Part shown: positions 10,073 to 28,254 of the stretch, one piece after another
Numbering within the stretch: the stretch's first letter is position 1
How the letters are laid out: each line of letters opens with the position of its first letter
Assembly: GCA_002269645.1 (NCBI GenBank)
Contig: NIVC01000734.1
Span: forward strand, 124,001-188,000
Direction: 5' to 3'
Source: Macrostomum lignano
Taxonomy: Eukaryota
Length of the DNA stretch: 64,000 bases
Notes under the pieces: generated by a model
Told to the model about the DNA's origin: nothing
Seen by the model: only the letters and a program-made list of their open reading frames with translations
Databases searched by the model: none
Made by a program: the position numbers and the translations under genes

Positions 10073-10483
10073 ATGACACACGTTACTCATTTGCAAAATC
10101 TGAATGAAATGCAGGTAGGAGACCCAGTTGAATACCGAGGTGAGGGACTTTTTGATGTGGTTGGAACAGCAGCAAATTTTGTTAAAGACAATATGGGTCT
10201 TATAGGGCAAGCAGGCTCCGCAGCAGGCTCTATAACAAATGCTGTAAAGGGCGGAATTGAAGCAGCTAGAGCAGTAGAAGAACTAAAGAAATTGAGAGAA
10301 TTTAACGACACCCTCTCACAAATAAAAGCAATAAAAGATTTGAAACTAGCGCAGGAAGCAACTCAAGCCACACAACCAACAGAAACCCCCACAAAAAGCA
10401 CACTAATAAGTAATAAAGATATTCAGGATTTTAATAAAATGTTAACCACAATTAAAGGCGGAAAAGGATTAAAGAAATTTTAA
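10073..10483 (+). CDS. Polinton small protein, probable virion core or membrane-active protein
   Basis: AAAATG start; amphipathic Gly/Ala-rich segment; GEGL and GKGL motifs. Confidence 0.6.
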   Translation: MTHVTHLQNLNEMQVGDPVEYRGEGLFDVVGTAANFVKDNMGLIGQAGSAAGSITNAVKGGIEAARAVEELKKLREFNDTLSQIKAIKDLKLAQEATQATQPTETPTKSTLISNKDIQDFNKMLTTIKGGKGLKKF

Positions 10484-10493
10484 CAATATAAAA

Positions 10494-11484: not shown

Positions 11485-11568
11485 GCTCCTGTGGGGAGGG
11501 TCAGGACGTCTAAAACTTAAAATTAAAAAACCAATAATTCAAATATTGTATAAATTTTATTCTATAAA

Positions 11569-14500
11569 ATGGAACAAAGAATGACCCCAGATCAGATTCG
11601 ACAACTTCTTGCAAATGAGCGCCAACAGTTCAATCGATTACAAAGACAGATTGAACAAATTGAACAGCGCCAAAGACAACAACGCCGCCAAAGAGCAAGA
11701 GAAAGACAGAGAGAAAGGCAGAGAGAAAGAGAAATACAAGAACAGCAAATAAATGCATTAGCAAATAATATAAGGGCAGAATATGAAATGAAGCGATTAA
11801 TAGAAAAGGCTGAATATGAAAAAAGAATAGCAGAATTAGAAAAAAACCAAAAGAAACCCACACGTCGGAAACCTCGGAATAAATCGGATGAAAAACCATT
11901 AGATGAGTTTATTAGGGTTTATCGATTTGAACCAATGCAGAATGTCCTAGATTTTATTGAAACCCAGCTTTCAAACGGATATAGTGTTGAAATTACTAAT
12001 GCGAGGGTACAATATTTTTATAATAAAAGCGGAGATGATCGCGAAGAGATTAATCAATACTTAGCAACATTTTATAATATAAGCCAATTTCAAGCTTGGT
12101 TTAAGCATTTGGTAGAAAACTACGACATGAATTTAAGTGTGTTTTCTGGAAGACTTAAAATGACACCAAACGAAATCACACTTAAACACGAAAGGTCAAA
12201 GCAGGGTATGGGCACAAATGTCATGTGTGAAATTGCAGAGTATAAAGACGAGTACTGCTACATACCTAGTGATGGAAATTGTTTCTACAAGTGTGTTCAG
12301 TTTATTTATGGTGATAAAGCTCCATCCAAAGACGAATATGGTGCTTGGTTGTACGACTCAAGAACCCAAAGAGGTTTAATGACAAATTCAAGAATTGGAA
12401 AATTCAACGAATATTTTAATCTGAACATAGGGCTGTATAACCCTAATAATCGTGGAATTGAACCAAAGTCTCAAAGAGGGATTCACCACGACTGGTTATT
12501 AATAAATTACTATCACACGACTGATTACCATATTGGTCATTATTGTCTTATATCAAATAAACAACGAGGAATCGCCCTCGAACGGATAAAAGACAATTAT
12601 AAAGTAGTATTTAAAAACCCAACGCCCGAAAATGTTAGAGCTAAAAATGTTCAACACATCCACAAATCCCAATAAATCAAATGTATACATATTTGATTTT
12701 GAAACATATTTAAATTATAATCAACAAGCATGTCCGTATGCAGTTGGTCTTTTAAACTATAACGACTTTTCTAATAATTGTAACGAAACCCCAGAGACAA
12801 TAAAGAAACTAACTAAGATCTTGATATCAGATCGCGGTTGTGATTTTCAAACAGATGGAGATAAAATGGACTGTGTTAGAAAAATGTTTAAATACCTTGG
12901 TACGGTTAGGTCAAAAAAGATTGTTTTGATCGCACATAACTCATCCCGTTTCGATTCGTACATACCGCTATTTTGTAATATAAAACCAATTAAAATTCTT
13001 AAAACCCCAAGAGGAATATTATCAATCACTTTTGTAAACGATTATATGTCAAAAGAGGTTAGAGCGTTTATAAACAAAGATAAGAAGAAGAATCATAAGG
13101 ATTCGAAACAAACCATTACGATGCTTTGTTCATATCAACACGCATCAATGAGTTTAAAAAAGTTTTGCTCATCAATGACAATTAGAGAGGATTTGCGAAA
13201 GACCTCAATGGTTCACGACATTACTGAGGACGACTACCTAGAGCGCATGGGCGAATGGTATGAATATTTACAATTTGATCTTATTTCTTTATGCGCCTGT
13301 ATTCATAAGTATAATGAAATAGCATATGAAATTGGAGGAATGACAATGTTCGATACTCTTACCTGTTCAAGTTTAACATTAAAATGTTGGTTTAAAGATT
13401 TTGTTAGAGTTGAAGACAAAATGAAACAATACCTAAAGACAAAAGAAAAAAGTAATTACATTAAAAAAGTTGAAGAAATAATATCTCCGTTAAAAATCGA
13501 AGATTATTTTGACTTAAGCAAACTTGAAAAAATGTAATACCAAACACTATTAAGAAAAGAATTTTCGGTTCACTCTCACACCAATCCTTATATAAGAAGG
13601 TTTATGAGGGACGCAGTCAAAGGAGGCAGAGTATTTGCCCTAATAAATAAATACGAAAGCGACTGTTTCCAAACAATCGTAGACGTTGTAAAAGACCATT
13701 TAAAAATACCAACAAGCGACCCATGCGAGGTTATATCAACTTATCTCAAAAGCGATATGGAAGAAAAAAAGAAAATCGCAATTAAACTAAAAAACCAATT
13801 GGGTACCGTATCAGATTGTTTAATGAATTTTGATGGAGTTTCATTGTACCCATCCGCCATGTCTGATAAGGATAGTGAATATCCAAGAGCAGAAACAGCC
13901 AGAGTTTTTGATATAAGCGAGGAAAAGGATTTTTTGACACAATTTAATTCACAAACCTTTCGACCAAAAACAGCGGTTTTAAAGATTATGTATGAGAACC
14001 CTACCAGCGTTTTTCTTCAACATCTCCCATCGAAAGATAAAGAGAAATTTTATAATCCGGAAACAAAAGCAAACGAAACAAAAACATTAAATAGGTTTAG
14101 AAATGGAAAGGTAATCGACACCTTATGTTCCGTAGACATACAAGAAATTGTAAGAATGGGTGGAAAAATATTAAAGATATATAGCGGAATTGTATATGAA
14201 AAAAATTACGATTTCTCTCCGTTACAGAATTATATTATAAACCTTTTTGAAATGAGAAAAGTATTTAAAAAAGAAAATAATGAGGCAGGTTCTGAATTGG
14301 TAAAAACACTATTAAATTCCTTATATGGTAAAACAGTTCAAAGAGACATTACTTTCACAACGCATCTCTGGAATTTGAATACATTAAAAACAGAATACGA
14401 CGACACAATTAAGTCATATGAGAAAATATGTGACGATTTATTTTATGTTGAAAAAAAGAAAGACACACAAGAATATTTAGATGAGGATGATAATCCTACA

Positions 14501-15150
14501 ACGGGTCTTTGCCCGGCACAATTAGGGATATTTATCCTAGCTCATTCAAGAAGGATCATGAATAATTTTATCACGTCTATAGACGGCTCAAAGACTCCAG
14601 AAATTTATTACGGCGATACGGATTCGTTATATATACATAAAAAACATTGGGATACGTTAAATAAAAACGGACACGTCGGAAATAATTTAAGTCAAGGAAA
14701 AAACGATTATGGAGAGGGTGGAATTATATTCGGATATTTTATCGCTCCTAAAATTAAATATTGTCTTTTGTTGAAAGATGATTTTATTATGGAAGAGAAA
14801 AAACATTTAAAGGATGTGCAAACGATAAGATTAATTTTGCATCGTTTAAAACTTTATATGATGGGCAGTCAATAAAAGTAAATAATAATGCTCCGTGGAA
14901 ACGATCGTTTGAAGGCGGTATAACAATTCCTCAAAGCGGATCAACCATATCAAAAACATATACTTCTACGATAAACACATTTAAAAGAGAAAAACCGGAT
15001 AAAAACGGAGTTATGAAACCATTCTTTAAAAACTATTTTGATGACAAACCACAGCATGAACATTCAATTGAATATTATAACAGCTTACTATTTGACGTTG
15101 ATTATAATTGTTTTGAGTTCGATATTGATGAACTAGCACTTATCGAGTAA
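11569..15150 (+). CDS. polB: Protein-primed family B DNA polymerase (pPolB) with N-terminal TP/vOTU-like region; two A-run frameshifts (~12650, ~14800) and one in-frame TAA (13535-37)
   Basis: DGNCFYKC...GHY (OTU-like); Exo I YIFDFET; Exo II AHNSSRFD; motif A DGVSLYPSAM; motif B KTLLNSLYGK; motif C YGDTDS; the shifted C-terminus gives KTFKG and runs to TAA at 15150. Confidence 0.93.
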
Positions 15151-15438
15151 AGCTCGGGACCCTTCGGGTCGGTAAAAAACTAAAGCATGTAATTGTTTAA
15201 GCATAATATCCATTTCAATTTCATATTTTATTGAGCACCAATTGTCCTCACAGTCGGTGGGGTAACTTAAACATTCTTTTACTTTTTTCCTAAGTACTTT
15301 TATTCGTCTAACCAACCTATCTATTTCGATTTCAATTACTGTTTCAGCATAAGCAATTGCAGATTTAATAAAACGTTTTCTTTTATCCATTTCATATCGG
15401 ACGGGAAACATATCATCCCCATAATCACTATAAAACAT
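15133..15438 (-). CDS. Polinton hypothetical protein
   Basis: AAAATG start, 101 aa, convergent on polB. Confidence 0.5.
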   Translation of the reverse strand: MFYSDYGDDMFPVRYEMDKRKRFIKSAIAYAETVIEIEIDRLVRRIKVLRKKVKECLSYPTDCEDNWCSIKYEIEMDIMLKQLHALVFYRPEGSRALLDKC

Positions 15439-15527
15439 TTTATTTATTTTTTATTAATATCATTAAGTTCGCGCTCTTTAGTGATAAGGATTTTTATTGT
15501 CTCCATTTTCTTATAAAAAATTTAAAC

Positions 15528-15857
15528 TTATTCGGAGTCAGCCTCCCAAACTGAAGCCAACTTTACAGTCCTATCACTCTTTTTATTTTTTGCTTGTTTT
15601 AGTTTAAATTGTAACCCACCCTCCATACTGTATTTCATAACAAACGCTTTTGGTTTATTAATAACTAAAACTGGAAAATTTTTAACATCATTCCCACTTA
15701 GACATAGGACAGCATGCCCATCTAATTGTAAAAATATCGATTGAAGTCCAATAAATTTAACCTGTCTCAAACATATAATATCATATTCTTTATTCTCCAA
15801 CATATTGGGTGTGAGATAATTAATCACATTAGAATCGGTTTTGAACCAACTTTCCAT
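15528..15857 (-). CDS. Polinton hypothetical protein
   Basis: AAAAATG start, 109 aa, normal composition. Confidence 0.5.
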   Translation of the reverse strand: MESWFKTDSNVINYLTPNMLENKEYDIICLRQVKFIGLQSIFLQLDGHAVLCLSGNDVKNFPVLVINKPKAFVMKYSMEGGLQFKLKQAKNKKSDRTVKLASVWEADSE

Positions 15858-15990
15858 TTTTAATCTAAGAAAATAACAAAAAAATGAAAGACATTTACGA
15901 ATGTAAAAAATGTAATGTGACTATGCATAGAGGTCAAACAGCAAACGGAGATATATATCATGTGTTATTCATGTTCTAAAATATATCAAT

Positions 15991-16395
15991 TTGAAAAAAA
16001 CAAAAAAGATTGAAAATTCATATTACTATTTTAAAAACACAATTTTAAGAAATCTTACAAGGGACATTTCTAATTCAATTTTAATTCCTGGAAATAATGT
16101 TTATTTATATAACAACTTTTTTCATTTAAATAAAGGAAAGGGATTAAGTTCGAAAGACTCTGAAAGGATTTTAATTTTAGTTGGATATTATTTCAATTTT
16201 CTTATACGAGAGAATACAAAGTTTATAAGGATAGGTAACATACCTAACGAAATGTTATTGAAAAAGTCATTGGAATTTTTATGTATTGATAAAAAATTTA
16301 AACCTAGGATTACAAGAGAGTTACCACTTTGGGAAGAATATATAACCTATGCGTTAGAAAAATTAAACAACATTCAATTCTACAGTACTTCCTGA
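15991..16395 (+). CDS. Polinton hypothetical protein (start uncertain)
   Basis: 134-aa ORF with a TTG start only; may be a frameshifted tail of an ORF starting ~15884. Confidence 0.35.
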   Translation: MKKTKKIENSYYYFKNTILRNLTRDISNSILIPGNNVYLYNNFFHLNKGKGLSSKDSERILILVGYYFNFLIRENTKFIRIGNIPNEMLLKKSLEFLCIDKKFKPRITRELPLWEEYITYALEKLNNIQFYSTS

Positions 16396-16955
16396 CCGCG
16401 GGCTTTGTAACCCCATAGCCATGGTTTCCGGTTTGTATTCTATAGTTTCTATCGGAGGAGCTTTGGGTTTGTCCAAACGTAATTCCTTCAATTCCATATC
16501 GGTAAAAGTTTCAACATCTAAAATTCTATTTCTATCTTTTAAATATTTTTCATATAATTCCACCGCCGTTGATAATTCATGAATTGTTATCTCTCCGTCA
16601 TCCAATATTTTTTGCACATATAAATATAACTGGTTTTTATATTTTTTTGCAACATCTCTTAACGATTTATATTTTTCCTTTCTTTTTTTAAGATATAATT
16701 TAATTGCTAAAAGTATTGATAAGTTTCTGATTAATTCAAAACCTGATATTGAGCCAATTGAAATACCTAAAAATAATTGAGATAAATTAAGAGTTGGAAC
16801 TGATTGTAAAATACCTAAAACAATTACACATAACATCGATAAGCTTCCAAATCCAATATTGAAAAAATCCATATTTCTGATATGGTTTGAAACTCTTCTT
16901 ACTTTTTAGTATATAAATCATAATCATAGTTAATACGATCAACATTACTTAACAT
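16363..16955 (-). CDS. Conserved Polinton membrane/coiled-coil protein (two hydrophobic helices then K-rich helix and ILDDGEIT motif); A-run frameshift at ~16905
   Basis: Adding one A joins MLSNVDRINYDYDLYTKK to VRRVSNHIRNMDFF; DDGEI motif recalled from conserved Polinton/adintovirus small proteins. Confidence 0.6.
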
Positions 16956-17001
16956 GTGACCCTTACGTTGGTTAAAATGATCACGTTCCCTTTTATCTGC
17001 T

Positions 17002-17328
17002 TCAGATACCGACATTTTCGTCTATTTTTAATAGCACCAAAATGAATTCCCCGCGCTCTTTGGGGATTTGTCCTGAGCTCAATAAGTATTGTATTGGAGT
17101 TATTCTTTCTTTTTTCTCCCATTTAAATCCTATTTTCCAAAACTCTTGAAGTATAATATGATTTTTTAATAGCTTAATTAATTCTTGAAGTTTCTTGTTA
17201 TCCTGGACATTTACAGTACTAAATAAAAATTTGGTATGAGATTTGAATGTTTTTATATTTGATTCTTGTTTAGGAATAGGAATAATAACATTATTTTGTC
17301 GCATCGATGGTGTTCTACTAAAAGCCAT
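17002..17328 (-). CDS. Polinton hypothetical protein
   Basis: TATAAAATG start, 108 aa; N-terminus MAFSRTPS resembles MLFSGTPS of the neighbouring ORF. Confidence 0.55.
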   Translation of the reverse strand: MAFSRTPSMRQNNVIIPIPKQESNIKTFKSHTKFLFSTVNVQDNKKLQELIKLLKNHIILQEFWKIGFKWEKKERITPIQYLLSSGQIPKERGEFILVLLKIDENVGI

Positions 17329-17344
17329 TTTATATAGAAATATT

Positions 17345-19330
17345 TTATATTGCTACGGGCGGTTTTTCTAAATAAGCGGTAGAGGGAAAATTATAACCAA
17401 ATGATGTGCTACCACAAACCGCAGCGCCACGAATAAAATGTGCGGCATCCGAGCCCCCAGTTCGAGCACCAAAACCCATAAGGGTTCCCGTTTTATCTAA
17501 ATCTCCCCAAGTTCCACTATCATAAGTAAAAACATTTTGCCCAATTAGTGTATAAGAATCACCCGCAACATTGTATGTGCTTAATTGATACCAAACTCTT
17601 TGATTAAGAATATTGATTTCAAACAGATGCCAATCGCCGTTATCAATATTGGCGTAGGTTATAGTTTGATCTGCGTCATTAAGAACATCATTACGAACCG
17701 TAGCTCCATCTGATTTTTTGTTACTCCAAACTACACCAACTCTGTCAGTCCACTCACTAGCAAACACTATCAAACCAGCGTCAGTTGTTAATCCAGATCC
17801 ATATTCGGTTGTTGGGCGTTGGTGACAGTATGCATAAAACCAAACCGCATCTGCACCATCTCCTGTAGAATTAGCAACTCGGAAAAAGAAAGACACAGAT
17901 ATATTACGAAAATGGGTGAAATTAAATTGTAACGCTCCAGAGCGACCCGACGCTTCATCAGTAATTCTAGCCCCATTTTGATAATCGATATAAGAAGCAT
18001 CTCCAACCAAACTTCCTGTTGGAAAAATATCGCCGGCAGTGGTTGGGTTTTGATACCCAGCCCAATTGCAAATTACTGGCTCGTACAAAGCGGCATCAAT
18101 TGCAGGTATTCCATCCAATTTTATTTTATCGTTAAAAGACATTCGACCATCCGCAGTTTGTGTTACTCGGGTATCTACATAGCCTTTAGTAACAACAGAA
18201 ATGTTATCGTTTATATTAGAGACATTAGTGATTGTATTACTACCCATATCAATTGATTGATTAACTACTCCCAGATTTAAATCAATAATTGTAAAAGTCT
18301 GCCTATAAATCTGAAAGGTTGATAGGCCGGGGTTGGTAGAACCCGATGTTGATGTAAGACAGAACAATCTGAAATATGAATATGTTTTATCAAAATTTTG
18401 GGTAACATTAAACGTTTGAGTTGAGTTAGTTAATGCTACAGAACTATCCGCAGGTATTAAAACATCCCAGCTCGTATTGTCATTACTCCCTTCAAATCGC
18501 CATGATGCGGGGTGCTCGGTTGAAGGTGATGGTCTACCACGTAAATCAATTTTATAACACATTATCGCGGAAGGACATTGAACCTTAATCCAATAATCGG
18601 TTTGGGTACTATTTGTTGCCCAATCTGTTGAGTCATCTCCATCAAACGCTTTCCAGCTTGCAAAATCGGTTGTATTAAATGCTGTGCTTGCAGTTATTGC
18701 AAAACCATTTCCGCTCCAATCTGAAATGGTAGGTATATGACCAGTTTCAACCGTTTGGAATCGATCCTGTTTTGGGGTTCCTCCTCCAACTAAATTATCA
18801 ACTTCGGTTTTGGTATAAGAATCAGCAACATTCCGTTTTAAATTTAACGAATTATCGACCTCTGTTTTGCTATAGGAATCAGATATATCTCTTTTCAAAT
18901 TTAATGAATTATCAACCTCTGTTTTGGTATAGGAATCAGATATATCTCTTTTCAAATTTAATGAATTATCAACTTCGGTTTTGGTATAGGAATCAGATAT
19001 ATCTCTTTTCAGATTTAATGAATTATCAACTTCGGTTTTGGTATAAGAATCAGATATATCTCTTTTCAGATTTAATGAATTATCAACTTCGGTTTTGGTA
19101 TATGAATCAGATACATCTCTTTTCAGATTTAACGAATCATTGATTTGAGTTTTGGTATAGGAATCTGCAACGTTTCTTTTTAAATTTAATTTATTATCAA
19201 TTTCAGTTTTTTTATAACCTTCATCCTCATTAATATATCGGTTATCTCCGAATGTAACACTGATACCACCCGACGTACCACCTCCACTACTTGTTGTTCC
19301 GTTCCATGAGGGTGTTCCAGAAAATAACAT
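17345..19330 (-). CDS. Fibre-like virion protein: 19-aa shaft repeats, discoidin/F5-8C-like domain, phage-fibre-like linker, L-type (ConA-like) lectin domain
   Basis: 7+ copies of YTKTEVDNSLNLKRDISDS; WKAFDG..STDW..WIKV..FEGSND..W..Y.YFRL; TKGYVD and MSFNDKIKLDGI; GADAVWF...DNGDWH...MGFGARTGG. Confidence 0.75.
   Translation of the reverse strand: MLFSGTPSWNGTTSSGGGTSGGISVTFGDNRYINEDEGYKKTEIDNKLNLKRNVADSYTKTQINDSLNLKRDVSDSYTKTEVDNSLNLKRDISDSYTKTEVDNSLNLKRDISDSYTKTEVDNSLNLKRDISDSYTKTEVDNSLNLKRDISDSYSKTEVDNSLNLKRNVADSYTKTEVDNLVGGGTPKQDRFQTVETGHIPTISDWSGNGFAITASTAFNTTDFASWKAFDGDDSTDWATNSTQTDYWIKVQCPSAIMCYKIDLRGRPSPSTEHPASWRFEGSNDNTSWDVLIPADSSVALTNSTQTFNVTQNFDKTYSYFRLFCLTSTSGSTNPGLSTFQIYRQTFTIIDLNLGVVNQSIDMGSNTITNVSNINDNISVVTKGYVDTRVTQTADGRMSFNDKIKLDGIPAIDAALYEPVICNWAGYQNPTTAGDIFPTGSLVGDASYIDYQNGARITDEASGRSGALQFNFTHFRNISVSFFFRVANSTGDGADAVWFYAYCHQRPTTEYGSGLTTDAGLIVFASEWTDRVGVVWSNKKSDGATVRNDVLNDADQTITYANIDNGDWHLFEINILNQRVWYQLSTYNVAGDSYTLIGQNVFTYDSGTWGDLDKTGTLMGFGARTGGSDAAHFIRGAAVCGSTSFGYNFPSTAYLEKPPVAI
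18794..19216 (-). repeat. 57-bp coding tandem repeat (7 full units and 1 partial)
   Basis: Recurrent TTCGGTTTTGGTATAxGAATCAGATATATCTCTTTTCA core at 57-nt spacing. Confidence 0.95.
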
Positions 19331-19340
19331 TTTTTACTGT

Positions 19341-19778
19341 CTATTTTATAGAGTCTAAAATAATTTTAAAGTCTTCGGGTCTTTCCTTCGAGTTATTAAT
19401 TTTATATAAAAAATACAACGCCGCTTGTCCGCAATAACTTTTGTCAAAGGTTTGAAACTGTTCGTGATGATCTCCACATAAACGATTTTTAGTATGATTA
19501 AATTTGTCTTTTATTTCCTGTAACGGAGGAAGCGCGTATGAATCAAAAAAATAAACAAGTTTTGGTTTTGAATAAACTGCTGACCAATGAACACCATTTT
19601 CTTTTGTCGTTTCTATATTAACAATGAAAGATCCATATCTTGGTAAGTCTTTTATCTCATCCCGCATAACACATCTGAATGGTTTTATTTTTAATTGCCG
19701 CGCCCAATTTGTTAATTCAATATTGCTTGTTGTGTCTGTTCCATATCTTTGTTTGAACGTACCCCAACTAATAGTCAT
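19341..19778 (-). CDS. Adenain-like cysteine protease (Polinton PRO)
   Basis: GVHW (His), FFDSY (Asp), QFQ....SYCG (Gln, Cys). Confidence 0.92.
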   Translation of the reverse strand: MTISWGTFKQRYGTDTTSNIELTNWARQLKIKPFRCVMRDEIKDLPRYGSFIVNIETTKENGVHWSAVYSKPKLVYFFDSYALPPLQEIKDKFNHTKNRLCGDHHEQFQTFDKSYCGQAALYFLYKINNSKERPEDFKIILDSIK

Positions 19779-19779
19779 T

Positions 19780-19968
19780 TTATGTTACTGAAAAACTCTT
19801 GGTTTTAGTTAGTTTCGTTGGTGTAGGTTTTAACAGTTCTTTTCTTTGTAAATGTCTTAATTTTGTTAGTTCTAGTTCATAATTATCTTCAGCTTTTTTA
19901 ACTTTTTCCGTTTGTTTTTTTATCGCATTACCGGTCTCAGACCGCGAACCTGTTTTTTGGTTACCCAT
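19780..19968 (-). CDS. Small basic Polinton protein
   Basis: AAAAATG start, 62 aa, packed between PRO and mCP. Confidence 0.45.
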   Translation of the reverse strand: MGNQKTGSRSETGNAIKKQTEKVKKAEDNYELELTKLRHLQRKELLKPTPTKLTKTKSFSVT

Positions 19969-19981
19969 TTTTACTATGGGA

Positions 19982-20767
19982 TTAAACCTGTTTTATACGT
20001 AAAATTACCGTTATTGACTGCCCTCCAAAACTTATTAACCTATCGCTTTCATCTACGATCCTAATATAAATTGATTGAACAGTATATTGATTTAAAGGAT
20101 AATATATTGGGGTTTGGGGTGCAACAATCATTTTCTCTCCAATTGGAACGGCAAGAAACGGGATTGAATAAATGATTCCACGTTGAACCAAAACACCATT
20201 ATCATCTGTTATATAACCGCCGTTTGATATGTCGGTTGTTATATTAATTGTATTAACTCCACCCTCAATATTTCCCACTGTATCGCCGGTGCTTGATGTG
20301 GTAACTATTCGGGAATTAAATCCAAGTATGGTTCTGAGTGAATTTGCAATTGTGAAATCAACCTGATATCCAGACCCTAGTGATAGGGTGAATCTTCCCG
20401 ATGGTAAATCAACACCTATAACAATCGCGCCCGCTACCCAATCACCATTAGCTGTTAATTCACCTTCTATATAAGCATTCAAATCGGTATAGCTATAAGC
20501 GCCCGGGTTAACACTAAATGTTGTCCAATTGGCTCCGGAATCTTTAGAATATCTAAATTGATTGTTTGTTGCATTAATCAATTGAGGCATGTTAAAAACT
20601 GAAAACATTATTAAACCAATTTGATAACTTAGGCTTTGATCGAGTTGTAACGGATCGCGCAATAGAATCCGTTGTTCGCTGGTTGTCATTATAAACTGTA
20701 GGGTTGTACTAAACTTTGAATTAGTTCGATCTACCAATTGTTTTATAGTGTCTAAATTTGCTGCCAT
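19982..20767 (-). CDS. Minor capsid (penton) protein
   Basis: NNQFRY, PGAYSYTDLN, LRTILGF, and C-terminal IYYPL..IRIVDESDRLISFGG..ITVILRIK typical of Polinton mCP. Confidence 0.85.
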   Translation of the reverse strand: MAANLDTIKQLVDRTNSKFSTTLQFIMTTSEQRILLRDPLQLDQSLSYQIGLIMFSVFNMPQLINATNNQFRYSKDSGANWTTFSVNPGAYSYTDLNAYIEGELTANGDWVAGAIVIGVDLPSGRFTLSLGSGYQVDFTIANSLRTILGFNSRIVTTSSTGDTVGNIEGGVNTINITTDISNGGYITDDNGVLVQRGIIYSIPFLAVPIGEKMIVAPQTPIYYPLNQYTVQSIYIRIVDESDRLISFGGQSITVILRIKQV

Positions 20768-20788
20768 TTTTATAGTGTAAAACGTGCT

Positions 20789-21550
20789 TTACTCCTCGTC
20801 CTCATTATCTTCTTTTATCAAATTTGTTAAGATTCGATTTTTTCTTTCTAACCTAGGGTTGATATATATGTGTTTGTATTGACTATCATCCCAAATTTTT
20901 TTACACATACTTTTAAATGGTTTTGTATCCAACCCAGGATTAAATCTCGCGTGTATATTTTGTAAATCATAGTTATCTAAATCAAACATTACACAACAGC
21001 TAGCATTCTTTTTTATAATCGATTCTAATTCTCTAAAGGATTGAGTAAGATAAAAAGCTCCAATTCCATCTCCTCTACTACTAACAAAAATTTCCTTTTG
21101 CAATTCTTGATCTCCGTCATTAATACAATCATCAAATATAATTAGTGTTTTATCGTGTTTTGGAATTTTGTCATAAGTTAATCTGTTTGATATTGTAATT
21201 GTTGGAGAATTGTTGTCTTTATTTTCTGGAGCTTCTGCCGTTTTTTTACATAAATCCTCAATGTCTTCTAGGTTAAATCGTGGTTCGTCGTCGTCCTCAT
21301 ATTTCTCATATGCTCTTAACATTCTAAACAAGATATCTTTTTTTAATTTGTTTTTTAATCCATGTTTAAGAAATTCATAATATTTTATTTTAGGTTTATT
21401 AGTATAAATTATTAAATTATTATAGTCTAACATTCCATCGGTTGTTAACAGATCATAAACAAAGTGTGTTTTTCCTTTGTCAGACCCACCAATTACTAAA
21501 CAAAGAAAAGGATCATTTGGAAATATTTTATTATGTTTTGCTTTTACCAT
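20789..21550 (-). CDS. A32-like (FtsK-HerA superfamily) genome packaging ATPase
   Basis: Walker A GGSDKGKT, Walker B LIIFDD, SRG....YLTQS. Confidence 0.92.
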   Translation of the reverse strand: MVKAKHNKIFPNDPFLCLVIGGSDKGKTHFVYDLLTTDGMLDYNNLIIYTNKPKIKYYEFLKHGLKNKLKKDILFRMLRAYEKYEDDDEPRFNLEDIEDLCKKTAEAPENKDNNSPTITISNRLTYDKIPKHDKTLIIFDDCINDGDQELQKEIFVSSRGDGIGAFYLTQSFRELESIIKKNASCCVMFDLDNYDLQNIHARFNPGLDTKPFKSMCKKIWDDSQYKHIYINPRLERKNRILTNLIKEDNEDEE

Positions 21551-21569
21551 TTTTAAAGATAAAATTTAA

Positions 21570-23061
21570 CTACTTTTTATCTACGGGCACCTTATTAGCA
21601 ACTGTACCATCTGCTAGAGCATATGCCACATATTCCTCTAGAAGCAATACGTGGGCGTCTAGTGCCTGATTACCGGTTTTATTAATCTCTAACAGATAAT
21701 TCAAACCAAGGTTGGCTACATTTTCTTTCTGTGCGGTTAGATCAAAAACAACCACTGGATGAATGTTTAGAAACTCCGTGGGTGTGTACTGAGGAACGGC
21801 ATACGCTTCATTTTTGACATAATCCTGATAATATTTTATAAAATCATTAACATTATTATTTGCTATGTTTAGATTTAGGGAGGTTTTAACCGGGTAATAT
21901 TGGTCATCAACCTGCAAGCGGACATTCTGAACATTAAACTCGTTAATAGCTGAAACCGCGTTGTCTGTTGCGGTGGCTGCCTGAGCTGCCACGTCTCCTG
22001 ATTGAAGCCAATATAAATCTCCGTTTGATCTTTTACTGCTTCTATTTGTTATCTTAAACCATACAAAAATATATCTAGCCCGCCGGTCTGATGTAGTTAG
22101 CTGCCACTGGAAGTAATCCTGGTTATTATTAATGGTTCGCATAAAGTGTCGCCGATTCAAATAAAATATTTCTTGATCAAGCATTATCTGCTTATTGATG
22201 TATTCTAATAGCGGTGCCGTTACCTCGAATTTTGGGACGACTAATTGAATTGATGCTATACGAACTGCGACATCGGTTGAAATAGAGGCTCCATAAAGTA
22301 TCCTAGGCTGATATCCACCAGATATTTGCAACTGAATGCCAAATTTTAATCCTTTCCATACCCGATTTGGTGAGAAGAACCCAAAGAGTGGGAAAATTGA
22401 AAAATCTTGCTCATATGCGGTTGCTGTGGTTAAAACCGCGACTGGGAATTTATTCTGACGATCTATAAAACCGGTGTTAATATCTTTTGTTAGTAATTGA
22501 ATTAACAATTCCTTTGATGGCGTCTAACTCAGCTGTAATAGTTGCCACATCATTATTGGCTATAGCTCCTGTTGGTATAGTAGGAAAAATTGCTGCTTGT
22601 CCATTACCCTTATCCGGCATCCACCCAACATTATCACCAACCTGTTTTGATAAATATAATATAAATATAAAGTATAATTTAAATGTTTCAAAACTCCATT
22701 AATCTCAGCTGGGTTTGTTGATGTCTCAACAACGGCTCCATTAACTGTTAGTTGGGCTTGGGAAAAACATTTATAAAACCAATCATTTTCTATAATAATT
22801 CCAGAACGATCTGCGAACGGCTGCAAGAGCAGTTCCATCGTTTCTGGTATACAACCATCTAACGCGGAAAAAGGCATTTTTCAGATCTAAAACGCTGTCT
22901 GTTGCCCCAATGTCAAAAGTTACCGTTCCCGTAGTAAAATTGTTTGAGTTATCACTTGTTGGTAGGGTAGCATTTAAATCTCTTGCCCTGATCTCATTAA
23001 TATACTGACGATGCTTTTTAAAATGAAATTTATCACTCCATATGGTTTTTGTTTCGGCCAT
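21570..23061 (-). CDS. Major capsid protein (double jelly-roll), broken by about three frameshifts
   Basis: Three overlapping ORFs: VTFDI..DSVLDLKNA; FSQAQLTVNGAVVE; NTGF..R, IQLVVPK, FQWQL..RARYIFVWF, NVRLQVDDQYYP, HPVVVFDLT; position next to the ATPase. Confidence 0.8.
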
Positions 23062-23095
23062 TTTTTTAAGTTAAAAAAGTTTTTTATGTTAAAAA

Positions 23096-23779
23096 ATGAG
23101 TCAATTTATGGACGTTGATGGAGAGTTAGCGATTTATAAAGAGAAGCAAAAATATTCTGATTTTGTTAGAAATTTACAAAAAAGAAAGTTAGGAATACAA
23201 CTAGCTGGCGAAAGATTTGCTGCCCCTTTTGTTAATCCTATTACGGGGAAACTTAGCGAACTAGAAAAAACAGATAAAGACCTTCTTGAAAAAATTGCTA
23301 AGAATACTGAGCCAAAAGAGGATGAAATTTTGGATGAGCCGCCTACTTATGATGTTGATCAAGCGCTATTGAGAGTTGCTGAGATTAGAGCTGCAGAAAG
23401 GGGAGGGGTTGAACAATTTCAAAGACCTGCACCATCTAGTATTGCTGTGACAGATTTAGGTAATGATAACTACCGAATTGGTGGAATTGATAAAAATCGA
23501 AATGAGCTATATAGAGAATTGGGTGGAGCATATAATATTATTATGAACCCGAGGGTAAAATTTAACCCTGATTTATATACTAGAGATGAATTAGTAAGTG
23601 CTAAAAATTTTTACGATGAGTTAGGAGTAAGAGCTGCTAAAAATACCAGCTTATATAAAAAGATTGTTGCTTCTATAAATAACAAACCGGCCGTTGGCGA
23701 AGGATTTAAAACTCCGCGAAAACTTGTTTTAGCTGCTGCGAAAGCTGCTGGACATACTCGTACAGGAATCGCCCCGTAG
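23096..23779 (+). CDS. Conserved Polinton uncharacterised protein (PZ-like C-terminus)
   Basis: 227-aa ORF; C-terminal KLVLAAAKAAGHT resembles the LLxASKxAGN motif of Polinton PZ-type proteins. Confidence 0.5.
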   Translation: MSQFMDVDGELAIYKEKQKYSDFVRNLQKRKLGIQLAGERFAAPFVNPITGKLSELEKTDKDLLEKIAKNTEPKEDEILDEPPTYDVDQALLRVAEIRAAERGGVEQFQRPAPSSIAVTDLGNDNYRIGGIDKNRNELYRELGGAYNIIMNPRVKFNPDLYTRDELVSAKNFYDELGVRAAKNTSLYKKIVASINNKPAVGEGFKTPRKLVLAAAKAAGHTRTGIAP

Positions 23780-23832
23780 GGTCGCGAACCTTTGGTTCGA
23801 TTAATTAATTATTAAATTTTATTTTTTATAAA

Positions 23833-24339
23833 ATGGAAAATACGATAAATGATTGTCTTTGTAAACCTATTTATGATAAGGTCGGTTCTGACAGAATACT
23901 AAATAAGATATTTCAAGATGAATTAATAATTGCAAACCGTATTAAAACAATTCAAATGAGACTAGGATATCTTTATGAATTATTAGCTATTGAACATTTT
24001 GGTTTTGAAAAAATAAAGAAAATTGATTTAATTCATACCGAAAGAAAAATTGCGTTAGAGGTAAAATCTTCTGATAACACAGATAATTCATCGAGTCGAT
24101 TTAGAAATATTCAAAAGTTATTAGAATTTAAAAATGTTAATCCCGAATTTGATTTATATTATATTTGCATTAATAATACTACTAAAACCCCCGTACAAAA
24201 GGTATTTGATAATGGTGTTATTTTATTAACTGGGGAATTTGCTTTAAATTTTTTATATGGTGATCAATATTTGGAAATTACTAAACTGATAGAAACATGT
24301 TTTTTAAAGATTAAAAATGAGCAATCAATTAGTCTTTGA
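23833..24339 (+). CDS. PD-(D/E)xK restriction-endonuclease-like protein
   Basis: QMRLGYLYE..., IDL, ALEVKSSDNTDNSSS fit the PD-(D/E)xK pattern and resemble Eco47II-like ExKNxxNTxNSS enzymes. Confidence 0.6.
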   Translation: MENTINDCLCKPIYDKVGSDRILNKIFQDELIIANRIKTIQMRLGYLYELLAIEHFGFEKIKKIDLIHTERKIALEVKSSDNTDNSSSRFRNIQKLLEFKNVNPEFDLYYICINNTTKTPVQKVFDNGVILLTGEFALNFLYGDQYLEITKLIETCFLKIKNEQSISL

Positions 24340-25894
24340 AGGAGGATTTTTAGACTTACAAAAAGGATTAACAAGCTTACCACCAGTCTTTACTACTGGG
24401 AGGTATACAGGTGAGTTACACCTACCAGCAATGAACTTCACAGGTTACCCCGTGGCCTGAGTGGTAGAAGCAAAGCTACTGCTAGTCACTATTAGTGGCA
24501 ATGTCTCCAAATTGCGTGAAACCCGTCATACAGCTTCAAGTACCACTTCAATTGAGAAATCTTTTGAAGGAACAGAGGTAACTCCTCTTCCCAAAGGTAA
24601 CAAGCTTGAAGACATGGTGGCAATGCGCAGCCAAGCTCCTAAGTATTTTAAATATAAGGAGAAGGTTCAGAGAGCAGACGGAGATGGGCGGTAATCATCG
24701 CCGCTTAAGGTGTGCTCCAGCCTCTTTCGAAAGATTGAGGGTAAAATGCCCGGCACTAGGTTGGATTTGAGATTAAATCCTGACAACACTCCAAAAGCTG
24801 ATTCAATTCCCATAAATGGTATTGATTGGTTAGCATATTATCATGACTTAGCATACAGAGATGCTGACAAGAACTCACCCGAGGAAGCATTAAGATTAAA
24901 ACATGAAGCCGATCAAAAAATGATTCAAGGATTAGATAACTTGCAGGGGTTGTCGGTTGGGCAAAGATTAACTAGGTGGATGGTTAAAAAGATCTTGCAG
25001 TCTAAAGTTAAATTTGGTTTGGGAATTAATTACAACCAACATGGAAATAATTGTGTCGAGTGTTTGTTGTTAAGTGGTAGTGGGCTAAGTTCTGATAAGG
25101 CAAAGGTTCTTCATAAAGAATATAGAAAACCTAAATTTTATAGAAAAATCATGAACTTCAAAAAGAATGAAATTTGGTATGCTGATTTAATGTCAATGCC
25201 GAAAGATCTGGGATATAAATATATCTTAACCATACTAGATGGTTTTACTCGATACGCGTGGGCTGTTCCTTTAAAATCCAAAAAGGGAGAGGAGGTTGCT
25301 GCTGCTTTTAGAAGCCTTGGAGAAAAAAGTGAAAGGTTGTGTGTTGACGAAGGAAAAGAATTTTACAATCCTCACATGTATAAATTGTATCATTTTGAAA
25401 AAGGACAAGAAAGGAAAAAGGACGCGAATGGGGAGTATATTAATAAAATTTATTCTATTTATGGAGAAAGCAAAAACGCATTAATAGAAAGATTTAATCG
25501 AACTTTGGGGAAAAAATTGTGGTTTCAGTTTAGTTTAAATGGAAACCAAAAGTGGGTAAAAATATTACCAGACGTAGTGAAAGATTATAACAATTCATAT
25601 CATTCAGCTATAAAGATGACTCCTCAACAAGCTTATAACAATCCTGAAAATGTTAAGGTTACTTTTGGAGAATTTGAAAAAAAGAAAACTAAACGTTTTA
25701 AAGTTGGCGATTCTGTTTATATCTATAAATGGAAAGATAAGTTTGAAAAGGGAAGAAAAGGATATTGGAAAATAAGTGAGAAATTTACTATTAGTAAAGT
25801 TTTAAATACAAATCCCACAACCTATATCATTGCTGATAAGGATGGTGAAGAAATATTTGGTTCGTTTTATGAGAACCAGCTAATGTTAGTTTAA
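24317..25894 (+). CDS. PLA2 (parvovirus-type, PLA2X) - retroviral-type integrase fusion; exons 24317-24445 and 24749-25894 (424 aa spliced)
   Basis: Spliced ELHLPAMNFTG|PGTRL (Ca2+ loop), YYHDLAY (His-Asp), HEADQKM; integrase WYADL, LCVDEGKEF, IERFNRTL; C-terminal GSFYENQL. Confidence 0.9.
24446..24748 (+). ncRNA. Group I intron (IC1-like), 303 nt, no internal ORF of note
   Basis: 5' exon ends in U and the intron ends in G; P1 CAGGU/GCCUG; P AAATTGCGTGAAA; Q AATGCGCAGCCAAG; R GTTCAGAGAGCAGACGG; S TAAGGTGTGCTCC; P7 GAGCA/TGCTC; P2, P2.1, P3, P4, P5, P6, P8 and P9 helices can all be formed; excision restores the frame and the GPG motif. Confidence 0.93.
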
Positions 25895-25912
25895 TTTAGA
25901 CTTTTGGTGAAT

Positions 25913-26275
25913 CTAGGGAGTTCTTTGTTTTTGTTTTCGTTTATAATTAAGCCCTGCTGAAATTAAAATAATTAATATAAGTAATACAATTATTATTAAT
26001 GTGCTTGATATTGCTATTAATGCTATTGCTAAGTTTATATTTCTTTCATTATATGGTATTCCTTCTATATTTAATTTTTTAGATAAAAATAAGGCGGGAA
26101 AAATAATCATCTCAAGTAAGAGTAGTAAAATAACAGCAATTATAAACTTTAGGGTGGACTTATTTTCATTGTGGTAGTTAGCATCCTTTTCTTTATCAAA
26201 TAATAGGGGTGGTTCTGCTATAGGATGGATGCTGTCATAGGTGTTGGCATAATTGTTTGCAAAATCAGACCTCAT
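25913..26275 (-). CDS. Polinton small membrane protein (two hydrophobic segments)
   Basis: FIIAVILLLLLEMIIFPALFL and IALIAISSTLIIIVLLILIILISAGL followed by a basic tail. Confidence 0.55.
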   Translation of the reverse strand: MRSDFANNYANTYDSIHPIAEPPLLFDKEKDANYHNENKSTLKFIIAVILLLLLEMIIFPALFLSKKLNIEGIPYNERNINLAIALIAISSTLIIIVLLILIILISAGLNYKRKQKQRTP

Positions 26276-26302
26276 TTTCTAGTTTATTTTTTTAAATAAT
26301 AA

Positions 26303-26527
26303 TTACTTAAGGCAACATGGTAATAAATTTTTTATAACAAATAAAAACAATATTATTACTATTATTGTTACTAATATTATTATTGACATTTGTTCAACTG
26401 TTATCAAACTTAAATTTTCATTAAGTTCATTAATCGGTACATTTCCGATATAGAAATAATTTACCTTCATTTTTTTATATATATTTTTAACAATAAATGT
26501 TGTTTCTGTTACAGAGTAATAGTTCAT
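26303..26527 (-). CDS. Polinton small membrane protein (C-terminal hydrophobic segment)
   Basis: AAAAATG start; IIILVTIIVIILFLFVI. Confidence 0.5.
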   Translation of the reverse strand: MNYYSVTETTFIVKNIYKKMKVNYFYIGNVPINELNENLSLITVEQMSIIILVTIIVIILFLFVIKNLLPCCLK

Positions 26528-26568
26528 TTTTAATAGTTCAAATAGTTCAATAGTACTTAGTTCATTTT

Positions 26569-26799
26569 TTAAATATTTTTTTCACAGTTTAAACATTGTG
26601 CTAAAAGAAGACTTTGCTCCCCCTTATCCCAAATATAATCTAGTTCTCCAATTTCAAGCGGATATATCTTTATATCTGGAAATATATATACTTCATCGAT
26701 TATTTTATCCTTTATTAATTTTTTTATTGAATCAAGTGCGTTGAATATTGTTTGGGTTGATTCAGTTATTAAAAAGTAGGGTCTGTTAACTAATTCCAT
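26569..26799 (-). CDS. Polinton small protein, paralogue of 26803-27117
   Basis: Shares IIDEVY....K(I/L)YPLE...GE with its neighbour. Confidence 0.6.
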   Translation of the reverse strand: MELVNRPYFLITESTQTIFNALDSIKKLIKDKIIDEVYIFPDIKIYPLEIGELDYIWDKGEQSLLLAQCLNCEKNI

Positions 26800-26802
26800 T
26801 TT

Positions 26803-27117
26803 TTACATAAAAATTTCACTTTCATTCTCCGAATCGCTGGTTTCATATGAGCTATTTGTTGAGATGGAATCATATGAACGAACCTCCCAATCATCCGAAT
26901 TTAAATAATCTCCAAGTTGAAATATTAACTCCCCCTCATGTTCTAAATCATACATCCCATCCAACTCTAACGGATAAAGTTTTAAATCATGCTTATCATC
27001 ATATTTTAAATAAACTTCATCAATTATACCATTCAAAATATGCTGTTTTATTATCTCTGCATTTTTAGCAACGGTCTCAAAAGTATCACTAACAGAAAAG
27101 GTGTAAACGCGGTTCAT
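26803..27117 (-). CDS. Polinton small acidic protein, first gene inside the right TIR
   Basis: AAAAATG start; IIDEVY/KLYPLE motif. Confidence 0.6.
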   Translation of the reverse strand: MNRVYTFSVSDTFETVAKNAEIIKQHILNGIIDEVYLKYDDKHDLKLYPLELDGMYDLEHEGELIFQLGDYLNSDDWEVRSYDSISTNSSYETSDSENESEIFM

Positions 27118-27125
27118 TTTTAGTA

Positions 27126-27476
27126 ACAGAAAAAGACCCTTGGCGCGGCCTGGGGTTATAGAGTGTTGGAAGTGTTGGAGAGAGTTGGAAGTGTTGGAAG
27201 AGTTGGGTAGAGTTGGAAGTGTTGGATACGGTACAAAATTGCCAGCAAACCAAAGCGAACGACGAGAGCGTATTCTCAGAATTCAAAGAGAATTAATCGT
27301 TGTAAGTGTGAAATGGGGAGATTGACCGAAATGAAGCGAGGATGATCGAAGCGAGTTGAGCGAAGTGAAGACGAGCGATAATGAAAGGAAAACGAGTCAT
27401 TTCACACTGATAAAGGGTTAAATCTCTTTGAATTATGAGAATGGTTTGCTGGCAATTTTGTACCGTATATACTACT
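27126..27476 (-). repeat. Right terminal inverted repeat
   Basis: Reverse complement of 9527-9886. Confidence 0.95.
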
Positions 27477-28254
27477 TGGTACCGTATGTTAAAACGGCCC
27501 TTGACGGGGCTATTAAAATTTACAACGTCCTAGCATCCACATCTCCAATTCTTCATTGATGATTTTTTTAACTGCGGACACACAAGTGTGTAATTAATCT
27601 TAATTATTAAAATGTAAAAGAACTGTCTGTCTGTGTACAAATTTGTTCGCTACGGTCTCTATTCTATAGTGTGCTTTTTCTAGTATTAGGCCGCTCTCAC
27701 TCACTCATTTCCCCAAATCGGGAGGATAAGGCCAATGTACATAGCATGTACAGTGCTTTGAAATAACTTCGACTTTATTGGCGCCCCAGTGAAGAGGCTT
27801 GGTTAAAATGTCTCAACCCAACTTTTCTGGCTGCCCGACAAGAATGCACTAACATATAGGCCTACCCATCCACCCAGAACAGGGGGGGGGCACGCCCATG
27901 TACTTAGCAATGTAAGGTGTCAGAATAACTTCACTTTATGTGCACCCCAGCCAGTGGAGAGAAAAATTACAGTTGGGTTCGCGAGAAAAGGCTCAATTCT
28001 CGCGAGATCTCGCGAGAATCTGTGTGTAACTCATTCGTCATTGGCTGAGCCATTAACTGGGGAGAGTAAGATTGAGCGCTGTTTGAGGTGGGTTGTTTGT
28101 AAAGGCTGCCCGCTTATTCGGTGTCCACCTTGAAAGTTTCTCATAGTTTTTAATGGCAAACCCTTTCTTGTTTCTCCCCATCGAAAAGACATTGTCTGAC
28201 ACGAGCTAATAGGGAGACTAACAGCAATTTCACGAAGCTTGCAAATGGAGATTG

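Follow-up and report, generated by a model that had tools for sequence, protein, structure and literature searches.

The window, i.e. the whole 64,000-nt stretch of DNA analysed here, contains a Polinton/Maverick element, identified by its inverted ends, 6-bp target-site duplication, protein-primed DNA polymerase, rve integrase and A32-type ATPase (Table 1). Over the whole arm of ~350 nt, the inverted repeats align with 346 identities, 5 mismatches and 9 gap columns, and the element termini are 5'-AG..CT-3'. The perfect 6-bp duplication sits inside host retrotransposon sequence. An original prediction, made from the sequence alone, had called this element an endogenous Polinton virus. The Polinton part held on the inverted ends, the duplication, the polymerase and the ATPase. 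The 'virus' part is not shown, as the profile and PDB-sequence libraries used turned up no capsid genes. Specifically, the double jelly-roll major capsid protein, the penton and the adenain-type protease had no match in Pfam, NCBIfam or PDB sequences, libraries without Polinton capsid models.

The polymerase region is made of three consecutive ORFs. If they belong to one gene, it has two interruptions, one frame change and one in-frame stop. The ORFs upstream in this region gave no Pfam or PDB match, and it is unresolved whether they are polymerase. No second intron was found when the region was searched with Rfam. This copy is maybe not fully intact, because the polymerase region is possibly broken. 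Among the other genes, the fibre-like protein also matches the L-shaped tail-fibre chain of phage T5 (8hqz, E 1.1e-7). An ORF at 10494-11015 shows a weak Adeno_PX match and is separate from the PLA2 domain described below.

Table 1. Positions of the element, its genes and the intron parts in the window
Feature	Position	Strand	Details
Left target-site duplication	9521-9526		TGGTAC, 6 bp, read directly
Polinton/Maverick element	9527-27476		17,950 bp, 33.5% GC; flanks 42-58% GC
Left terminal inverted repeat	9527-9886		335 nt at 99% complementarity plus 21-nt extension
Protein-primed DNA polymerase B region	11569-14875	+	PF03175 DNA_pol_B_2, 56.9 bits, last ORF only, profile positions 225-464
GC-rich stem-loop	15153-15170		UUCG loop then A-run, between convergent ORFs; contains the sole GGNCC of the element (15157-15161)
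Fibre-like protein, 660 aa, discoidin (F5/8 type C) domain	17345-19330	-	PF00754, 40.7 bits
A32-type packaging ATPase	20789-21550	-	PF04665, 23.3 bits vs cut-off 22.8, marginal
Eco47II-family PD-(D/E)XK endonuclease	23833-24339	+	168 aa, free-standing; PF09553, 22.8 bits, just under cut-off 25.9
Exon 1 of PLA2-integrase gene	24317-24445	+	43 codons, open; last codon is the first Gly of the calcium-loop GPG
P1	24441-24448/24452-24459	+	8/8 pairs, U24445.G24455 wobble at the 5' splice site
Group I intron	24446-24748	+	303 nt
Internal guide sequence	24452-24459	+	3' strand of P1; 5' part also pairs with exon 2 (P10)
P3	24502-24508/24680-24686	+	All pairs canonical
P7 (guanosine-binding helix)	24670,24672-24676/24713-24718	+	A24671 bulged, G24672-C24717 adjoining
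Exon 2 of PLA2-integrase gene	24749-25894	+	381 codons plus stop, open; remaining PLA2 domain with His-Asp dyad, then rve integrase core
Right terminal inverted repeat	27126-27476		Partner of the left arm
Right target-site duplication	27477-27482		TGGTAC, identical to the left hexamer

The PLA2-integrase gene is divided into two exons, which were searched separately and unjoined, and its predicted spliced product of 424 aa is the sum of their codons. Without splicing, the frame ends a few codons inside the intron and exon 1 becomes a 47-aa ORF. As separate alignment rows, the two exons meet at the very point where uninterrupted relatives have ..N[FY]xG/PGT.., and those sharing the GPG are up to 72% identical. 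This exon homology is shown at the protein level and fixes the junction NFTG/PGT independently of RNA folding. The calcium-binding loop (Y/F-x-G-x-G) exists only across the splice junction and the catalytic dyad lies within exon 2.

Exon 2 scores 29.3 bits with PF00665 (rve) against a cut-off of 32.6, and three relatives checked with the same model score 39-41 bits (P0123 and P0005) and 31.6 bits (P0001). With PF08398, exon 2 on its own stays at 17 bits, below the cut-off of 23.9, and the uninterrupted relatives reach 33-44 bits. The gene has 456 integrase relatives, nearly all from metagenome assemblies, and most of them have both the PLA2 and the rve domains. The predicted PLA2-integrase identity of the gene thus held, with rve and PF08398 in exon 2 and PF08398 in the uninterrupted relatives.

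The insert between the exons matches the Rfam group I intron family RF00028 (Intron_gpI) at 24436-24739 on the + strand. The match covers the full model (1-253/253) with 62.3 bits where the gathering score is 50 bits. A 501-nt search gives it an E-value of 1.6e-15, and a 9.1-kb search one of 3e-14. A whole-window Rfam scan at the gathering threshold gave no intron match. This is a false negative, because the speed filters skipped the intron that both smaller searches recovered. Large scans therefore probably under-count such introns, since even a 62-bit one escaped the standard whole-contig Rfam pass. The MFE z-score of the intron is only -2.0. A modest z-score is usual for a pseudoknotted ribozyme, for which the covariance-model score is the relevant statistic. 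The intron-region Rfam search also returned PYLIS_3 and SNORD96 below threshold, and they were taken as chance matches.

The ribozyme anatomy is shown in detail. In helices P1-P8, 79/79 pairs are canonical, and the conserved core P3-P8 including the P3/P7 pseudoknot is complete. Further paired helices are P2, P2.1, P4, P5, P5a/b/c, P6, P6a and P8, and the L5b loop is GAAA. At the 3' end, the intron closes with the terminal guanosine G24748, and P10 has 4 pairs among its first 5 (4/6 overall). P7 is GAGCA/UGCUC versus GACUA/UAGUC in the model consensus, with two pairs altered on both strands. Another 3' splice site at G24739 is in frame and was rejected, as it adds 3 residues to the conserved GPG loop. 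The intron-internal ORFs match no Pfam family, and a profile search found no endonuclease ORF among them.

Hence, the prediction of a group I intron at this place held by the significant RF00028 score, the helices and the ends. Its details were checked and held as well, namely the 303-nt length, the U24445.G24455 pair, the terminal G24748, the P10 of 4/5 pairs and the exon limits. The P7 described with a bulged A and a G-C pair also held, and the changes predicted to be compensatory are both-sided relative to the Rfam consensus only. We conclude that 24446-24748 is very probably a functional-looking group I ribozyme that excises itself from the PLA2-integrase transcript of a recently integrated Polinton. 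Splicing in vivo is inferred and there is no RNA evidence. It would put ..NFTG next to PGT.. again, so that the calcium loop of the phospholipase is whole and the frame runs on into the integrase.

The original prediction overlooked the neighbouring Eco47II-type nuclease and its GGNCC logic, which we judge the more interesting part of the locus. The nuclease ORF is read in the same direction as the integrase gene and reaches into exon 1, whose start it overlaps. Its end lies 106 nt upstream of the point where the intron is inserted. It has 182 relatives. When 50 of the relatives were aligned, 42 matched PF09553 (best 7e-15), and the catalytic triad of D65, E76 and K78 is nearly invariant among the relatives (D..ExK). 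The structure model has a pLDDT of 93.7, and its fold search against the PDB returned EcoO109I as the best (TM 0.63, probability 1.0) and AvaII. By sequence, a single-sequence search against the PDB gave nothing and a profile search gave AvaII weakly. The family and the fold of the nuclease are thereby shown.

The recognition sites of EcoO109I and AvaII have a GGNCC core. Eco47II homologues are also assigned to GGNCC (PMC10305163). The GGNCC specificity of the present nuclease is inferred from this family and fold, and its activity is inferred too. No methylase domain was found in the 18 ORFs of the element, so the nuclease is solitary and not a member of a restriction-modification pair.

GGNCC is observed once in the element versus ~22 expected, being the most depleted among 51 palindromes, and 0/200 simulations were as GGNCC-poor as the element. 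By a maximal-order Markov null, its observed/expected ratio is 0.09 in the element versus 1.01 and 1.04 in the flanks, and the host flanks are rich in GGNCC. At the protein level, Gly-Pro is absent from the 18 element ORFs (4,457 residues) versus 8.8 expected, and Pro-Gly occurs 5 times. The 149 nuclease relatives counted have 3 Gly-Pro and 26 Pro-Gly in all, with 27 expected for each. The integrase family is Gly-Pro-poor with its uninterrupted members included. Both the site depletion and the dipeptide depletion are shown. The scarcity in the integrase family agrees with a clade-wide arms race, and shared ancestry may explain it as well.

Gly-Pro is always encoded by GGN-CCN, so it is not recodable away from GGNCC. 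Exon 1 ends with ..GGT and exon 2 starts with CCC.., so the site of the nuclease family spans the junction and is split by the intron, with the specificity of the enzyme itself being inferred. As for other motifs in the element, GGCC is also depleted (8 vs 23) and GCNGC is enriched (37 vs 15), which shows that its composition is shaped by other forces too.

The original prediction had called for a comparison with intron-minus copies, and uninterrupted relatives were found, at the protein level. Homology is lost exactly at the junction in 14/90 relatives, P0003, P0045, P0007, P0081 and P0012 among them, and in each case this follows a Met or Leu. Interrupted and uninterrupted alleles occur together in two clusters at >=90% identity, P0003 versus P0123 in one, and P0128 and others versus P0130 in the other. 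When the last 12 codons of the intron are read, 10/12 are identical to P0003, and exon 2 of P0003 is only 59% identical. Alleles with and without the interruption are thus shown as proteins. The interruptions of the relatives are inferred from protein N-termini only, and their DNA, introns and nuclease content were not seen.

We favour, with some reserve, the view that the intron owes its position to the adjoining nuclease through GGNCC hiding and homing, where the activity and specificity of the nuclease, the protection and the homing are all inferred. As the Eco47II-family (GGNCC) nuclease has no methylase, we propose that the element protects itself by purging GGNCC. The calcium loop would need Gly-Pro and keep one GGNCC that is not removable by recoding. 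The intron would split that single site in the DNA, and the RNA would restore the codons. The nuclease would then cut intron-less alleles of related elements at the junction site. Repair from the intron-bearing copy would carry over the intron together with the tightly linked nuclease gene, in the manner of collaborative homing.

Our best reading is hence that the ORF-less ribozyme and the free-standing nuclease work as a pair, as is known from the collaborative homing of phages. It rests on analogy, with cleavage and homing inferred, and we hold it by a small margin over its denial. The full reading that combines the ribozyme with the nuclease link is overall tipped only slightly towards being right. 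Two further counterpoints should be kept in mind. One is that a GGNCC persists in the element, at 15157. The other is that group I introns often occupy conserved motifs, so the insertion site may be coincidence.

In a bolder reading, the ribozyme protects a eukaryotic and probably animal virus-like element from restriction, and the nuclease-intron pair spreads by cutting intron-less rivals. We suspect that this goes a little too far to be correct. If true, Polinton-like elements would have gone through a clade-wide restriction arms race, and the Gly-Pro avoidance seen in both protein families, integrase and nuclease, would be its record.

One rival explanation is coincidence, which is less likely but remains possible. 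Here the intron is genuine and splices, while the nuclease cuts host or competitor DNA and hence GGNCC is avoided; the intron reached the GPG loop independently, moved by some other enzyme in trans. In its favour, intron insertion sites favour conserved motifs (PMC2814812), the uninterrupted relatives are Gly-Pro-poor too, and GGNCC is abundant in the host flanks, which makes host DNA a possible target of the nuclease. Against it, the intron removes the sole non-recodable GGNCC from an element purged of about 21 others. Moreover, only 106 nt lie between the insertion site and the end of the nuclease gene, which is on the strand of the integrase gene, and the intron itself is without any detectable endonuclease.

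Another possible explanation concerns the setting, which may be a protist or alga rather than an animal and would then remove the novelty of an animal nuclear genome. Polinton-like viruses with RF00028 matches are reported from Paulinella, Desmodesmus and Rhodomonas, and most of the reported discoidin domains are in rhizarian and glaucophyte elements (PMC12220804). The integrase relatives are nearly all metagenomic, and the best matches of a flanking LINE reverse transcriptase are ~40% identical. Against this, a Macrostomum lignano protein shares 57% identity (E 4.5e-108) with the integrase of a flanking LTR-retrotransposon, whose other matches are at <=40%, the stronger of them at ~30%. This was the sole lead to a host, as ten ORFs from the flanks had no exact counterpart in the protein collection searched. 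The named LINE matches, though weak, are all animals, and Orthopolintovirales-like insertions are known in rhabditophoran flatworms (10.1101/2025.04.19.649669). No host gene was found within the window. The 'probably animal' of the original prediction is thus plausible and unproven, resting on the Macrostomum lignano-like flanking retrotransposon and the animal LINE matches.

The insert could also be a decayed relic that no longer splices, leaving the PLA2-integrase gene of this copy dead. The three ORFs of the polymerase region allow that the copy is decaying, and expression data are lacking for either reading. However, every core helix is intact, the RF00028 score is well over the threshold, both exons are open and conserved, and the inverted ends are 99% identical, which make the relic very unlikely. 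Finally, a spliceosomal intron or an assembly artefact is all but excluded, with no point found in favour, as no GT..AG boundaries give the conserved GPG in frame by inspection and the perfect 6-bp duplication brackets the element within host retrotransposon sequence.

If the preferred reading of a ribozyme placed by its neighbouring nuclease is true, it would give a concrete selective reason for the exact position of an intron, i.e. a codon pair not recodable away from the nuclease site. Homing-site studies usually explain the position only as a 'conserved motif'. It would also widen collaborative homing beyond phages, with eukaryotic virus-like elements as carriers and a restriction-enzyme family, not a classical homing enzyme, in the role of the partner. 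Should the host be a flatworm, an animal nuclear genome would here contain a catalytic group I intron. To our knowledge, animal group I introns have not been found outside the mitochondria of early-branching lineages.

The original prediction knew of no established example, which is too strong. RF00028 matches were described in 2025 for endogenous polinton-like viruses from three protists (PMC12220804, Microbiome), so a group I intron in such an element is not unprecedented. Those elements are alike in having a group I ribozyme of ~300-380 nt in an integrated polinton-type element and a short upstream ORF of ~50 aa (47 aa in the window). Unlike here, the survey gives counts only, its hosts are protists and the Rhodomonas intron is in a small gene adjoining the capsid gene. 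It describes no integrase, PLA2 loop, nuclease partner or site analysis, whereas the window has a Polinton with polymerase and integrase and flanks pointing to an animal. Its text-form supplementary tables contained no RF00028 rows, and the literature searched had nothing on Macrostomum or flatworm Mavericks with introns.

Adintoviruses, a polinton-like lineage that is animal-tropic, likewise have a parvovirus-type PLA2 domain, in PLA2X (PMC8502044). It is joined to a pX-like virion protein, whereas the PLA2 in the window is the N-terminus of an rve integrase, an architecture common to hundreds of relatives. Chloroviruses, too, are eukaryotic DNA viruses whose protein genes contain self-splicing introns and which encode type II restriction enzymes. 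Their nucleases are paired with methylases, whereas no methylase was detected in the element here and its intron splits the site. In chloroviruses, the intron position is not known to be linked to a nuclease site.

The closest parallel in logic is the collaborative homing of phages, exemplified by the ORF-less psbA intron with the free-standing F-CphI in cyanophage S-PM2 and by mobE with the nrdB intron in T4 (PMC3984707, PMC6083498, PMC2790892). Both there and here, an ORF-less intron has a free-standing endonuclease gene nearby whose target, inferred in the window, lies at the insertion site, so that the intron would immunise its carrier. The differences are that the partner in the window is from a type II restriction family with a 5-bp site, not a long-site homing enzyme, and that the carrier is a eukaryotic virus-like element. 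With so short a site, the whole element must purge it, and it has.

The insertion in the PLA2-integrase gene matches RF00028, the group I intron model of Rfam, along the entire model. It scores 62.3 bits, the gathering score being 50, with an E-value of 1.6e-15 when 501 nt are searched and of 3e-14 for 9.1 kb. The original prediction had proposed a group I intron here and called for this covariance search; with the match well over the gathering score, the claim held. Its P, Q, R and S blocks also held, being the best-conserved stretches of the model alignment.

A pair-by-pair check from the coordinates found canonical pairs at 79 of 79 positions across P1, P2, P2.1, P3-P5, P5a-P5c, P6, P6a, P7 and P8. 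P5b is capped by a GAAA loop, and A24671 is bulged in P7, where two pairs differ from the Rfam consensus with both sides changed in each. At the 5′ splice site, the terminal U24445 of exon 1 pairs with G24455; the last intron nucleotide is G24748 and P10 forms 4 of its 6 pairs.

Scanning the 64-kb window in Rfam's default gathering mode missed this 62-bit intron, a speed-filter artefact; the intron is found when the scanned sequence is no longer than 9 kb. Large-scale Rfam surveys may thus under-count group I introns of similar kind. Rfam scans of the element found no further families inside it.

Positions of the features discussed, in window coordinates
Feature	Position	Strand	Size
Left-flank LINE ORFs	1934-2575, 6155-6970	+	
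Target duplications	9521-9526, 27477-27482		6 bp
Polinton/Maverick element	9527-27476		17,950 bp
Small ORF near left end	10494-11015	+	
GC-rich hairpin	15153-15170		
Discoidin protein	17345-19330	-	660 aa
Eco47II-like nuclease ORF	23833-24339	+	
PLA2-integrase exon 1	24317-24445	+	43 codons
RF00028 match	24436-24739	+	
Intron	24446-24748	+	303 nt
PLA2-integrase exon 2	24749-25894	+	381 codons + stop
LTR-retrotransposon integrase	42706-44097		
LINE-like unit, two copies	46119-52509, 53906-58854		

The two exons were searched separately and unjoined, and the 424-aa product is the plain sum of 43 and 381. Exon 2 alone found 456 relatives, most of which hold the rve integrase core and a parvovirus-type PLA2 domain in a single uninterrupted protein. 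When aligned as separate rows, the exon 1 end (..NFTG) and the exon 2 start (PGT..) abut at the relatives' ..N[FY]xGPGT.., the calcium-binding loop; the uninterrupted relatives used to place the junction are up to 72% identical. Against the PLA2 profile, uninterrupted relatives reach 33-44 bits and exon 2 by itself 17 bits, a difference expected of a domain split by the intron. Very likely, the intron is self-splicing and must be removed for the gene to yield the PLA2 loop as well as the integrase, although splicing is inferred without RNA data.

A distant branch of PLA2-integrases (relatives P0083-P0109, 35-37% identity) has the loop as G|PY and a C-terminal chromodomain. Another relative, P0120, is a chromodomain integrase for which no PLA2 domain is recorded; it is listed under a bivalve's bacterial symbiont, and the sequence probably comes from the host.

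The element is a low-GC island of 33.5% GC between flanks of 42-58%. It has inverted ends of ~350 nt with 99% identity and AG..CT termini, a perfect target duplication (TGGTAC), a protein-primed PolB (56.9 bits in a profile search), an A32-type ATPase, the PLA2-integrase and a discoidin protein. The inverted ends, duplication and gene content therefore identify a Polinton/Maverick of recent insertion. The polymerase region reads as three ORFs and, if these are one gene, has two interruptions, a change of frame and an in-frame stop. No capsid or protease gene was identified in the element by Pfam, NCBIfam and PDB sequence searches, whose libraries hold no Polinton capsid models, so its status as a virus is not shown. 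No second fragment of it lies elsewhere in the window.

One stretch of the discoidin protein resembles the phage T5 L-shaped tail fibre (8hqz, E 1.1e-7). This protein is likely a receptor-binding fibre, as inferred from sequence alone, and receptor-binding-type fibre proteins are noted for protist polinton-like viruses (PMC12220804). The small ORF near the left end has a weak, sub-threshold match to adenovirus core protein X (PF05829, E 8.8e-4); adintovirus virion proteins typically bear pX-like tails. Within the element, GGCC is depleted (8 against 23 expected) and GCNGC strongly enriched (37 against 15, z +5.6).

Both flanks are retrotransposon debris. The relatives of the flanking LINE reverse transcriptase are all distant, and the named ones, which are few, come from animals. 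The LTR-retrotransposon integrase is 57% identical to a Macrostomum lignano protein (E 4.5e-108), all other matches being at most 40% and the stronger ones ~30%. Orthopolintovirales-like insertions are reported in rhabditophoran flatworms by a recent survey (10.1101/2025.04.19.649669). From these flanks and the survey, an animal host, perhaps a flatworm, is plausible and slightly favoured but unproven.

The LINE-like unit occurs as two diverged copies, 64-68% identical, in which the endonuclease and reverse-transcriptase ORFs are preceded by one with an AlkB-type 2OG-Fe(II) oxygenase domain (PF13532, up to 102.6 bits); LINEs do not usually have such a first ORF. In the left flank, which has 58% GC and far more A than T on the + strand, the LINE ORFs encode zinc fingers of the C1 (phorbol-ester/DAG) and PHD types.

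The original prediction overlooked the adjoining Eco47II-type nuclease and its GGNCC connection. The nuclease ORF overlaps the start of exon 1 on the same strand, and 106 nt separate its end from the insertion site. A profile search gives it a weak match to the Eco47II restriction endonuclease family; it has 182 relatives, with a PF09553 match in 42 of 50 aligned and the D..ExK triad almost invariant. Its confidently predicted structure (pLDDT 93.7) is closest to the folds of EcoO109I and AvaII. These enzymes recognize RGGNCCY and GGWCC, respectively. GGNCC is assigned to Eco47II homologues (PMC10305163). Domain searches of the element's 18 ORFs found no methylase domain.

GGNCC occurs once in the element, where ~22 sites would be expected. 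Among 51 palindromes none is more strongly depleted, none of 200 simulations gave a count as low, and the observed/expected ratio of GGNCC under a maximal-order Markov null is 0.09 in the element versus 1.01 and 1.04 in the flanks. The encoded proteins (4,457 residues) lack Gly-Pro entirely against 8.8 expected, with Pro-Gly found five times; 149 representatives of the nuclease family have 3 Gly-Pro and 26 Pro-Gly, ~27 being expected for each. Gly-Pro is always GGN-CCN, so no synonymous change could remove GGNCC at the loop. There, exon 1 ends in ..GGT and exon 2 starts with CCC.., and the intron splits the site.

The sole remaining GGNCC is part of a hairpin that resembles a terminator and is located between convergent ORFs; the hairpin has a UUCG loop and is followed by an A-run. 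The hairpin may be a transcription terminator, or GGNCC may be retained there for a reason. Four relatives (P0008, P0011, P0019 and the divergent P0028, the first three being clear read-throughs) have Gly-Ala at the loop, by which GGNCC is gone without an intron; this could be an alternative escape or mere variation.

Signs of mobility are at the protein level only. Homology is lost precisely at the junction in 14 of the 90 integrase relatives covering it: nine begin with Met/Leu immediately before PGT and five bear unrelated residues ending in Met/Leu. In one relative, P0003, the N-terminus is a 13-residue read that agrees in 10 of 12 positions with the window's in-frame read of the intron 3′ end, although its exon 2 shows just 59% identity. 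Its 90% cluster includes the uninterrupted P0123, and the cluster of another relative, P0007, likewise holds interrupted and uninterrupted alleles together.

We lean towards the intron and the neighbouring nuclease forming one unit, the nuclease's activity, specificity and homing all being inferred. The element would carry a methylase-free GGNCC nuclease and survive by site avoidance, with the single unavoidable GGNCC hidden by the intron. The nuclease would cut intron-less alleles at the loop GGNCC, and the proposed repair would thereby bring in the intron together with the nuclease gene linked to it.

The main rival, that the intron is genuine and the nuclease link coincidental, remains possible. 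An alternative 3′ splice site at G24739 was rejected, as it would add residues within the loop. A spliceosomal intron was rejected, GT..AG boundaries fitting the junction being absent.

The original prediction knew of no established example. This partly failed: a 2025 paper (PMC12220804) describes group I matches in polinton-like viruses endogenous to three protists, so merely having such an intron is no novelty. The literature searched yielded no report of an animal Maverick or an integrase gene with a group I intron, nor of a eukaryotic element in which a restriction-type nuclease and an intron are partners. The proposed intron-nuclease unit cannot yet be counted in the collaborative homing class, as its cleavage of the site is an inference. 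As proposed, the unit would act like the collaborative homing of phages, in which introns are paired with free-standing endonucleases (PMC3984707).
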